A stretch of DNA of 63,983 nucleotides, the filler included, from Parasitella parasitica NRRL 2501 (Eukaryota > Fungi > Mucoromycota), in assembly GCA_025201805.1 (NCBI GenBank). It is 11 parts of 11 records of this genome, joined end to end, with 100 filler letters (N's around TTAATTAATTAA, not from the genome) between each part and the next. Parts side by side here need not be neighbours in the genome. Positions count along the whole stretch, not along the records: positions 43,711 to 45,878 come from MU619576.1; positions 45,979 to 51,254 come from MU619458.1; 9 more parts are not named here. One strand, given 5' to 3'. Shown in pieces: positions 43,711-46,187 of the stretch; the stretch's first letter is position 1; the number at the start of each line of letters is the position of its first letter. A program made the position numbers and the translations under genes. The notes beneath the pieces were generated by a model that did no database searches, was not told the DNA's origin, and was given only the letters and a program-made list of their open reading frames with translations.

Positions 43711-43855
43711 AGTTATTAACACTTAATGTATAATCGATTTATGGTTTTTGTTTTGCTGTTTACTGCTGTGGATTTCCTAGTCTAATATTAATATCACGTG
43801 TACCTGAATTCTGAGGTCAAAACGTAATAAAAAATTGGAAGAGTGAAAGAAAGGT
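43711..43855 (-). mobile_element. 5' end of the autonomous LINE family (continues 5144-5239)
   Basis: 43711-43805 is identical to 5144-5239 apart from a 1-nt indel. Confidence 0.88.
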
Positions 43856-43870
43856 GGGGATGTAGCTCAG
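43856..43870 (+). other. 15-nt tRNA-Ala-like 5' fragment GGGGATGTAGCTCAG (putative TSD; second copy 45824-45838)
   Basis: Direct repeat flanking the ORF1-only element. Matches the common eukaryotic tRNA-Ala 5' acceptor strand and A-box start. The remainder of the tRNA is absent. Confidence 0.75.
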
Positions 43871-45823
43871 GCGAAAATTTATGTTTATTGAATACAATGA
43901 TATACAAAGTAAAAAAAAAAAAAAGGCTATAATGCATGCGATCTTTTGATCATTGTTGCTAGCCAAGAGTTGCGACATACAAAAAAGAGGTAAAAAAAAC
44001 AGTTGCAGATCAAGTTTGATTTCGATGTAGGAACATGAAACATGTCCTAAAACAGAAAAGGGTCTATACTTGAAAAGCAGCTGTCAAAAAAATGTAATGT
44101 ATAGGCAAGAAAAGAGGGAAAAACAGATGAGAAGGAAGGGAGTTCAAGAAGATGTGGTGTATGAACTGTGCAATTGAGGAAACCTCGACAGACATACAGC
44201 AGCACAAACAAAATGAAATCACACAACCAGTGATGAACACAAAAAAAGCGGGAAAAAAAGGAGAAACAGGACATTTGCAAAAAAGCAAAAAAGGAAAACG
44301 GCAGCACAGACCAAAAGAAAAGGAAACAAAAAAAAGAAGAGGGAAGAAAAAGGAGACAAATACAAACCACAAAAGGGCAATAGTACAAGAGACAGCATAG
44401 AGAGACGAGGAGCAGCAGCAAAGAAAAAAGATAGATTATAGATATCAAACACCAGCAAACTCTGGCATTGGCGTATCTACAGCAGCAGACGAAAGAGGAG
44501 AGAGAACAGGCGATTCGGCATAGGCCAAAAGCTTGGCGGAACTAGCATCATGATGCAAGAGGAAACCAAGATAACGCAAGCGTTGTTTCTTGGCAAGACG
44601 CTCTTGATCAGAGGATGGTGAGGCAGAAGGAGGAGAGGCAGCAGGACGCAGAGACAATTCTTCAGCTAAAATAGCATCGAATTGTCGCTGGGTAATTTGC
44701 TCGTAGTGCAAAAACGAGCGAGCAACAGAAAGACGAACAGAACGACGAACAAACGAAAGCGCACGGAGACAACGACGGTTTTCTATCTCAATGGCCTTTT
44801 GAAGGCGGAGAGAGGGAGACAGAGAAGCAAATTTGGGATCCCTCAAGTTGATAGGATCGCAAGGATCAAAATCAACAAGAGGAGAGCAACCACGACCGTA
44901 TTTGTGCATGGCACTGGTGAAAGTGAGCACATACTCATTGTGGATGAGGAAGGAGACAATATTTGGAACTGGATATTGAATATCCAGGACACGAGAGTTG
45001 TTTAATCCAAGAGCCTGGATTAAACGGCGGAGAACAGCAAGAGGACGACGAACAGAGATTTTCATATACACAAACCGATATCCCTGAGGAATACCGGTTG
45101 TGTTGGGCCCAAACAAACGACCGACGGTAGCAGCGGCCTTGGTGATGGATGGAGGTGGAGGGGCAGCAGGTTTCTTCTTTTGTCTTTTGCCGCCAGAGAC
45201 GACAGAAGCAAAAGTAGGAGCAGTAGTGACAGTAGCAGCAGCAGGAGCAATAGCAGCTACGACAGCAGCAGGAGGAGAAACAGTTGGAGGGGGAGTGGTA
45301 GCACCCGAAACAAGCGCAAGCTTTGCTTCAAGAGCAAGACGAGCAGATTCAGATTCTGCTAGAGCAGCTCTTAGCTGAGAAATCTCGGCATGAGCTGCCT
45401 CTAGACGACTGAGACGATTTCTAACCTCTATAATAAAGGAAGAAATGTTCAAATCGCCCTCAGATGAGGCAGAGGGAAGAGTTGTCAAGCCAAAGTCAAA
45501 TGATGAGGAGGAGGGTGAGTCCATCCTAACAAAATTATTTGGCTGGGAGCGGGCGGCGGTGCTGGTGGTGTTGGGGTTCTTTTTAGACTTTAATTGCTGA
45601 GATAAATCTACAGCAAAAAAAGGTGGTGAAAGTGATGAAACTGGCCGTTTCTGACCAGAAAAAGACGAAACTGACGAGGAGTCGGTAATTTTGTTTGTTT
45701 CCTTAATGGATGCTATGATAGATCAAGTAAAGACAATGGATGTATACAGTGATGGCAATTTTTTGGATATATCTGAGATGGAATGTATACAAAAAATTGG
45801 TTAGCGGAAAGAAAGGTGGGGAT
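43871..45823 (-). mobile_element. Non-autonomous ORF1-only LINE derivative
   Basis: Bounded by the 15-nt repeats, with a single ORF1-like gene and no ORF2. Its 3' motif is shared with positions 6-39 and its 5' motif with 43829-43855. Confidence 0.8.
44445..45524 (-). CDS. LINE ORF1 homolog, intact (359 aa)
   Basis: Coiled coil, PQGYRFVYM, RVLDIQYP and DFDPCDPINLRDPKF motifs. Confidence 0.85.
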   Translation of the reverse strand: MDSPSSSSFDFGLTTLPSASSEGDLNISSFIIEVRNRLSRLEAAHAEISQLRAALAESESARLALEAKLALVSGATTPPPTVSPPAAVVAAIAPAAATVTTAPTFASVVSGGKRQKKKPAAPPPPSITKAAATVGRLFGPNTTGIPQGYRFVYMKISVRRPLAVLRRLIQALGLNNSRVLDIQYPVPNIVSFLIHNEYVLTFTSAMHKYGRGCSPLVDFDPCDPINLRDPKFASLSPSLRLQKAIEIENRRCLRALSFVRRSVRLSVARSFLHYEQITQRQFDAILAEELSLRPAASPPSASPSSDQERLAKKQRLRYLGFLLHHDASSAKLLAYAESPVLSPLSSAAVDTPMPEFAGV

Positions 45824-46187
45824 GGGGATGTAGCTCAGTTTAAGATTGAATTTTTATTAATAGTATCTAATGCATTAANNNNNNNNNNNNNNNNNNNNNN
45901 NNNNNNNNNNNNNNNNNNNNNNTTAATTAATTAANNNNNNNNNNNNNNNNNNNNNNNNNNNNNNNNNNNNNNNNNNNNTGTGTAAAATCTAATCACTGGT
46001 GCTTATTTTGGACACCTAGTTGCTAAAGCATCACCAGTAGTTAGGATTTTATCACACAAGTTGGCCATGGTGTCAATCTTCAATTGAAGTACATTGCCAT
46101 GATCTCCTATCTATAATTATGGCAGATCAGTTTGACCTAAACTCCTTGCTTTGTTTGTCTGATCCTCTCAATAAATTGGCAATCAAC

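Follow-up and report, generated by a model that had tools for sequence, protein, structure and literature searches.

We examined a window of 63,983 nucleotides, the whole stretch of DNA analyzed herein, which joins 11 parts of the genome of the fungus Parasitella parasitica NRRL 2501 (assembly GCA_025201805.1), and we focus on the part at positions 43,711 to 45,878 (record MU619576.1; hereafter, the piece). It holds minus-strand retrotransposons of the long interspersed nuclear element (LINE) type, arranged head to tail and separated by the beginning of a transfer RNA (tRNA) gene. Specifically, the 15-mer GGGGATGTAGCTCAG occurs twice in the piece, on the plus strand at 43856-43870 and 45824-45838, where none is expected by chance (no match in 100 dinucleotide shuffles). 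As an earlier reading of this DNA (the original prediction) had described, each copy is a divider between the 3' end of one minus-strand element, marked by AATAAA, and the 5' end of the next. To the left of each 15-mer lie some 50-65 nt of related 5' untranslated region (UTR), beginning ACCTTTCTTTC (reverse complement of 43845-43855 and 45807-45817). To the right, the element 3' ends resemble each other weakly and bear minus-strand AATAAA motifs at 43884-43889 and 45853-45858, 14 and 15 nt ahead of the element ends. The AATAAA segment at the first junction is, as predicted, the 3' end of an element with a single long open reading frame (ORF), the central unit of 1,948 nt, which finishes in ...TTTTCGCC without poly(A) (AATAAA at 43889-43884); the segment at the second junction, earlier presumed to be a third element, has the ...TTAAAC end and AATAAA of one.

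The spacing and composition of the piece recur elsewhere. The distance from one tRNA fragment (hereafter, stub) to the next is 1,968 bp here and 1,924-1,980 bp at nine other loci, and the 145 nt of the array-distal element align with the start of the central unit's 5' UTR and with the units bearing only ORF1 at loci L001, L003, L004, L011, and L013-L016. ARAGORN found no intact tRNA in the piece, which is an internal section of a longer head-to-tail array (Table 1). Considered together with the related loci described below, it very probably represents an array of a site-specific Mucorales family of retrotransposons without long terminal repeats (non-LTR), of the apurinic/apyrimidinic endonuclease (APE) type, that inserts antisense in tRNA genes.

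Table 1. Features of the piece at 43711-45878, in window coordinates (TSD, target-site duplication)
Feature	Position	Strand	Description
Array-distal element, first 145 nt (5' UTR)	43711..43855	-	5' end at 43855 (ACCTTTCTTTC...); clipped by piece edge
Stub 1, tRNA-Ala positions 1-14 in tRNA sense, one TSD copy	43856..43869	+	Exact repeat; equals first 14 nt of L004 tRNA-Ala(AGC)
Complete ORF1-only non-autonomous unit, 1,948 nt	43870..45817	-	5' UTR 45817-45525, ORF 45524-44445, 3' UTR 44444-43870
ORF, 359 aa, LINE ORF1 homologue	44445..45524	-	Sole long ORF between the two 15-mer copies
3' UTR block conserved in ORF1-only lineage, possible stem-loop	44142..44236	-	Sequence comparison, ten loci
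Extra GGGGAT at 5' junction	45818..45823	+	Repeats stub bases 1-6; second junction
Stub 2, tRNA-Ala positions 1-14, second TSD copy	45824..45837	+	Exact repeat
tRNA-proximal element, last 41 nt	45838..45878	-	3' end ...TTAAAC, AATAAA 45858-45853; clipped by piece edge

Junctions at tRNA genes in Mucorales

We fetched 17 loci (L001-L017), each oriented with the element sense as the plus strand; the related loci come from Mucor, Parasitella, Pilaira, Benjaminiella, and Rhizopus, plus a Phycomyces locus (L017). The junctions follow one pattern. After each of 33 element 3' ends (28, plus 5 in L016) stand the first 14 nt of a tRNA in antisense, no stub lies on the opposite strand among the fetched loci, and all eight array heads within reach have an intact antisense tRNA gene adjoining the element's 5' end. 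In the solitary M. circinelloides unit (L001), an antisense intact tRNA-Tyr ends exactly at the start of the 5' UTR, and the identical 14-mer recurs right after the unit's 3' end, followed by unrelated DNA. Longer arrays read, in order, tRNA-Lys, autonomous LINE, stub, ORF1-only unit, stub, and flank (L011), or tRNA-Glu, LINE, stub, ORF1-only unit, stub, LINE, stub, and flank (L012, M. velutinosus). The L004 array is headed by an intact Mucor-like tRNA-Ala(AGC), whose first 14 nt are the stub of our window, and the further heads are tRNA-Lys (L007, L013, and L015) and tRNA-Thr (L014). Ten identical Ala stubs, each after a 3' end, occur in L003, and what lies downstream of them is either a full 5' UTR or a copy 5'-truncated at varying internal positions; such truncated copies also follow stubs in L007. 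Another tRNA supplies the 14-mer at five junctions of Rhizopus stolonifer (L016), spaced at about 4.85 kb, each set between a similar 3' end and a ACCTTTCTTTCGCT 5' start. Terminal stubs give way to ordinary genomic flank, and copies adjoin tRNA genes among ordinary genes.

Within the window by itself, the repeat runs from the 15-mer into the common 5' UTR and is readable as one longer terminal repeat, as if the 15-mer were the element's own 5' terminus, once captured from a tRNA, in a plain tandem of LINEs with no tRNA targeting. Across the loci, however, the element ends are constant and the 14-mer follows whichever intact tRNA (Tyr, Lys, Glu, Thr, Ala, or another) lies beside it. It also stands ahead of 5'-truncated copies with differing internal starts and, at the ends of arrays, ahead of unrelated genomic flank. 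The stub thus belongs with the neighboring tRNA, and we find an origin as the element's own terminus, a case that the original prediction had named as its refutation, scarcely credible.

The core of the original prediction carries over to these independent genomes. Antisense insertion inside the A-box region is seen at junctions between tRNA positions 14 and 15 (14|15), an intact tRNA is restored by the TSD next to the element's 5' end (eight of eight heads), and elements are stacked with short tRNA stubs between them, in arrays that run from an intact tRNA to a stub and genomic flank. The check in other Mucorales that it had suggested gave the same architecture in loci of Mucor, Parasitella, Pilaira, Benjaminiella, and Rhizopus. 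Two parts need amending. First, the duplication is tRNA-derived, as proposed, but its length is 14 bp rather than 15 (stubs 1 and 2 in Table 1). In tRNA-Lys, tRNA-Glu, and the L004 tRNA-Ala, position 15 is an A, and the stub is still preceded by a C; that C is therefore the element's own last base, and the TSD comprises tRNA positions 1-14. The element 3' ends finish at C, 13-19 nt past AATAAA, and the final G of the 15-mer is the complement of this terminal C. By homology to the other loci, bases 43870 and 45838 would accordingly be assigned to the element and not to the tRNA. Second, tRNA-Ala is indeed used, as the head of L004 and its 14 nt demonstrate, but so are tRNA-Tyr, tRNA-Lys, tRNA-Thr, tRNA-Glu, and at least three further tRNAs.

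The breadth of targets is matched by the constancy of the junctions. Eight distinct 14-mers occur across the loci (Ala, Tyr, Lys, Thr, Glu, and three unassigned), and the Glu 14-mer is unrelated to the others but for T8, G10, C13, and A14. Whatever the tRNA (8 species) or the genus (6), all junctions fall at 14|15 and at +1, and the ORF1-only lineage is present at every target type. Within one genome, ORF1-only copies in the Ala array and in the Glu array differ by a synonymous divergence (dS) of 0.02-0.04; hence, one young sublineage has reached tRNAs with unrelated 5' sequences. In P. parasitica itself, at window positions 43865, 43869, 45818, and 45833 of the read layout, contigs of four runs link the same ends of the element to different stubs: one has GCCTGTTTG and then GCTCA, and another puts CGCGGTTGGTT between 45818 and 43869. 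These other tRNA-like stubs imply that this genome also has the family at non-Ala tRNAs.

Small irregularities accompany some junctions. Short repeats of the stub end are present at 5' junctions in L013 (AGGC), L014 (CC), and L016 (C), comparable to the GGGGAT of the window. In L013 (5753, 9709, and 11633), where the head junction has the extra AGGC and the array contains an N gap, each of the two stubs has a single substitution (C for T) relative to the head's intact tRNA-Lys, which suggests either that a mutation occurred later or that the stubs derive from a different copy of the gene.

The trait, as shown, extends to Mucoraceae-level genera plus Rhizopus only. No tRNA adjoined the element in the fetched DNA of the distant relatives L009 and L010 (33-36% ORF1 identity) or in that of the Phycomyces ORF2 locus L017. 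A separate tRNA-like sequence is present in L009 (85-100), where AGCTTCTCCACCA agrees with the tRNA-Ala 3' end followed by CCA; read on the opposite strand, this would be the primer-binding site of an LTR retrotransposon that uses tRNA-Ala.

The ORF1-only unit and its autonomous partners

The arrays of M. velutinosus that contain ORF1-only units also contain elements with two ORFs, ORF1 (326 aa) and ORF2 (1,114 aa). In these autonomous partners (L003 and L012), ORF2 matches the Pfam families Exo_endo_phos, Exo_endo_phos_2, and RVT_1, that is, an APE domain and a reverse transcriptase (RT). The best solved relative of ORF2 is human L1 ORF2p (E=7e-17), with R2 at E=6e-13, matches that do not separate the clades, and the only solved structure matched by the APE domain alone, by sequence, is the TRAS1 endonuclease (weakly, at E=0.013). 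An L1-like poly(A) tail is absent: none of the 33 3' ends has an A run. Two autonomous subfamilies, with ORF2s just 29% identical, have the same cut position, orientation, and stagger, and the trait is therefore old in the clade.

The ORF of the window (359 aa) has no Pfam match and is homologous to a LINE ORF1: by BLASTP, it is 31% identical (E=3e-28) to the ORF1 that precedes the APE-RT ORF2 in L003, and it matches the ORF1 of L012 at E=3e-12. It has 61 homologues, the named ones all from Mucorales (Mucor, Parasitella, Pilaira, Benjaminiella, and Rhizopus), and a metagenome scan with the ORF1 alignment returned only 4 loci. The ratio of nonsynonymous to synonymous substitution rates (dN/dS) between lineages is 0.2-0.35, and the ORF is thus kept up by purifying selection. 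Its AlphaFold (AF2) model, with a mean predicted local distance difference test (pLDDT) score of 73, places an N-terminal helix at residues 25-73, a disordered basic linker, a beta-alpha-beta-beta-alpha domain at 148-219, and then a helical C-terminal domain. VIA-align gave many matches of the RNA recognition motif (RRM) type to the central domain at Z 6-8, generic RRM and coiled-coil matches only, and L1 ORF1p is absent among the matches listed; a Foldseek search of the model against the PDB gave no significant match. The predicted architecture is a coiled coil, a basic linker, an RRM-like domain, and a helical C-terminal domain.

To judge from their sequences, the family is an APE-type non-LTR retrotransposon (LINE), with an ORF2 of APE and RT, TSDs, 5' truncation, and no terminal repeats, and the central unit is a non-autonomous, ORF1-only member of this true LINE family. 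ORF1-only units and autonomous LINEs have common arrays and common stubs, and the former are presumably mobilized in trans by the ORF2 of the autonomous LINEs of the same arrays. The 3' ends are of two types. The ...TTAAAC type occurs in autonomous LINEs and some ORF1-only units, in L001-L004, L007, L011, and L013; among ORF1-only units, it is found in M. circinelloides, Parasitella, and Pilaira. The unit of the window, like those of M. velutinosus and Benjaminiella, instead has the distinct ...TTTTCGCC end, a type present also in L003, L008, L012, and L015. At the other end of the element, the first ~12 nt (ACCTTTCTTTCC or ATCTCTTTCC) are kept from Mucor to Rhizopus, between which the ORFs are just 50-60% identical. 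Lying directly upstream of the rebuilt tRNA gene after insertion, this conserved start may serve the LINE promoter, the tRNA gene, or both.

A block of the 3' UTR (44142-44236; L001:9517-9611; eight further loci, ten in total) lies 256-322 nt from the 3' end of the ORF1-only units, and read depth is raised over it in the read layout. Its consensus fold is weak (-7.7 kcal/mol, with a double change at 9 of 18 pairs), as is the covariation for a stem-loop, and the block was not found in the autonomous LINE. It therefore does not yet explain mobilization in trans.

The family also surfaces in public data under other guises. The M. velutinosus ORF1-only proteins P0012 and P0013 bear the product names "white collar 2 type of transcription factor" and "Thymidylate synthase," and P0024 and P0032 are called "Flavin_Reduct domain-containing protein" and "Heat shock transcription factor"; these mutually unrelated names look like annotation errors for a transposon protein. 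Further, many homologues sit on contigs (Logan, ENA, and JGI) one unit long, ~1.9-2.0 kb where the unit is ORF1-only and ~4.5-5.4 kb where it is an autonomous LINE, as short-read assemblies are expected to break at repeated stubs.

Proposed insertion mechanism and its alternatives

What is observed is that the tRNA sense strand meets the element's 3' end just after A14 and that the other junction lies at +1; the outcome is 14 duplicated base pairs, an intact tRNA rebuilt at the element's 5' side, and a 14-nt stub at its 3' side. A mechanism consistent with this would begin with the ORF2 endonuclease nicking the sense (non-template) strand of the tRNA gene at 14|15, after A14. Reverse transcription would then be target-primed there on an RNA ending ...C, with no poly(A), and integration would be completed by another nick, at the boundary -1|+1, 14 bp from the first. 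Each new copy would thereby enter between the tRNA body and the previous stub and push older copies away from the tRNA, such that repeated hits would yield the order tRNA, element, stub, element, stub, flank. Priming by a read-through stub that anneals to the nicked tRNA strand was considered and set aside as not required, given near-identical copies at Ala and Glu sites.

Since cut position and stagger are constant across tRNAs with unrelated 5' sequences, recognition is probably via universal features of tRNA genes (T8, G10, A14, and G18/G19 of the A box) or via factors bound there. The motif YCA|R is too short to define the site alone, and we speculate that the A-box consensus, RNA polymerase III (Pol III) factors, or the structure of the displaced strand adds the specificity. 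Extending this, one machinery might recognize a universal feature (either the A box and the Pol III factors bound to it or a fold of the D arm in the non-template strand once displaced), cut after A14 in nearly any tRNA gene, and restore the gene by an exact 14-bp duplication. Such a pan-tRNA strategy, conserved across Mucorales and exploited by the ORF1-only rider, is a proposal we make tentatively, crediting it with slightly less than an even chance.

The targets could also be divided among enzymes. Each LINE subfamily may read the DNA of few tRNAs, as other sequence-specific LINEs read theirs, with the pan-tRNA range made up of several specialized enzymes and a promiscuous non-autonomous rider. 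The ATCTC-type autonomous LINE has been seen only at tRNA-Ala and tRNA-Lys, both with a GCTCA-type D arm, and the GGAGA-type, the other of the two subfamilies with 29% ORF2 identity, only at tRNA-Glu. Few autonomous copies have been sampled, however, both subfamilies make exactly the same cut with the same 14-bp stagger, and every target type carries the ORF1-only lineage; a division of labor of this kind therefore strikes us as possible but rather doubtful.

Several points weigh against antisense insertion into tRNA genes as we describe it, or against parts of it. The head of the window's array lies outside the piece, and an intact tRNA-Ala was not seen in the P. parasitica genome. Nicking and active retrotransposition are putative, and which ORF2 mobilizes the ORF1-only unit is a matter of presumption. 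The autonomous subfamilies were seen at few sites, which bears on the choice between a single enzyme for all tRNAs and several specialized enzymes with a shared rider. At a tRNA-Lys of L007 (169-240 and 2149-2175), a longer duplication of 14+9 bp reaches 9 bp into the upstream flank of the tRNA, and ~40 nt of filler precede a 5'-truncated unit; second-strand cleavage is therefore not always exact. Finally, the read layout (Logan unitigs and contigs) breaks at the repeats, and the continuity of the array is not confirmable from it.

This last point, along with the lack of any Logan contig that crosses a whole junction with both neighbors and a read depth that is high and uneven, raises the prospect that the array is an assembly artifact of collapsed or mis-joined repeats. 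Yet the sequence is present in six DNA runs from six studies, the unit length agrees across loci, and the same architecture is found in independent assemblies of at least six other species, chromosome-scale contigs included. An artifact is thus extremely unlikely.

Array growth by duplication must also be counted against insertion. The tRNA-Ala array of L003 (2229-18755) contains a higher-order duplication of ~14.2 kb, with stub pairs at 2229/16561, 2564/16790, and 4534/18755, and its ORF1-only copies are near-identical. Unequal exchange therefore adds to the growth of arrays, and not every unit is an independent insertion. Taken to its limit, a single ancestral tRNA insertion would have been amplified by unequal crossing-over, segmental duplication, or gene conversion among tRNA genes. 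That account, however, meets arrays that mix two autonomous subfamilies, ORF1-only units, and truncated copies; near-identical copies at tRNA-Ala and tRNA-Glu sites without homology for recombination; and the same junction geometry at at least eight tRNA species in six genera. We consider it very unlikely as the origin of the arrays, and repeated antisense insertion into tRNA genes remains our preferred reading.

Comparison with known systems

For targeted insertion of DNA from an RNA template, site-specific LINEs are the main natural models, and insertion at one nucleotide of many tRNAs, with the gene rebuilt, would be a new solution to harmless integration. If true, a pan-tRNA, gene-preserving safe-harbor strategy of a LINE would be previously undescribed. 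The family makes it possible to test how an APE-type endonuclease attains nucleotide precision on divergent sequences. It also accounts for repeat arrays and for unit-length contigs of ~2 kb and 4.8 kb in Mucorales assemblies, as well as for the M. velutinosus gene models with unrelated product names, and it is relevant to the expression of tRNA genes and the stability of the genome in fungi of which some cause mucormycosis.

Among APE-type LINEs, R1Bm, TRAS1, and Tx1L insert precisely into a multicopy target, lack a long poly(A) at their exact 3' junction, and duplicate a short target site of fixed length (14 bp in R1). The Mucorales family resembles them in its APE, its precise site in a multicopy target, and its fixed short TSD, whereas their targets are ribosomal DNA, telomeric repeats, and other transposons rather than tRNA genes. 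To our knowledge, no such sequence-specific APE LINE restores its target gene. For the ORF1-only lineage, a counterpart exists in HAL1 (half-L1) of mammals, which is non-autonomous, conserves ORF1 only, and relies on the ORF2 of a partner. HAL1 likewise keeps only ORF1, but it belongs to another clade and host, and the conserved 5' UTR start and 3' UTR block of the Mucorales lineage are its own, as is, in some units, the type of the 3' end.

Non-LTR elements specific to tRNA genes are already known. Those of the NeSL group comprise NeSL-1_TV at tRNA-Pro, LIN15_SM at tRNA-Arg, and LIN25_SM at tRNA-Glu; they have a restriction-like endonuclease, use one tRNA species each, and inhabit Trichomonas or planarians (PMC4640811). 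Like the Mucorales family, they use a fixed site inside tRNA genes, with a multicopy gene as a safe target; in contrast, the Mucorales family is APE-type and fungal, uses at least eight tRNA species at one structural position, and has the gene rebuilt by the TSD. The Dada DNA transposons likewise enter tRNA genes, where the A box and the anticodon region are their hot spots (PMC3706591, PMC8869645), but they employ a DDE transposase, with one tRNA or small nuclear RNA per family, and the known examples are all from animals. Within the group studied here, Grem-LINE1 of Mucor is L1-like and lies only in pericentromeric regions; its ORF1 bears zinc fingers, it has a zf-RVT domain, and tRNA is nowhere mentioned in the paper describing it (10.1101/706580). 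Unlike Grem-LINE1, the tRNA family has no zinc-finger or zf-RVT Pfam matches in ORF1 or ORF2. In the Rhizopus genome paper, the only elements reported near tRNA genes are of the LTR type (PMC2699053). We found no description of this APE-type, multi-tRNA, gene-rebuilding family in the full-text literature, a coverage that leaves out Repbase Reports and subscription journals, such that an earlier description is possible.

The breadth of targets has a parallel in elements that integrate beside tRNA genes. Dictyostelium TRE5/TRE3 and yeast Ty1/Ty3 use the tRNA gene of any isoacceptor, probably via Pol III factors, and integrate upstream (~50 bp) or downstream, never inside the gene, with no fixed nucleotide or TSD (PMC5006619, PMC5911963). 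The TRE elements are, like the Mucorales family, APE-type LINEs that address tRNA genes in general, whereas the Mucorales family inserts inside the gene, between positions 14 and 15. It thereby stands as an intermediate between the strict sequence specificity of R1/R2-type elements and targeting that is imprecise and guided by factors, as in TRE and Ty.

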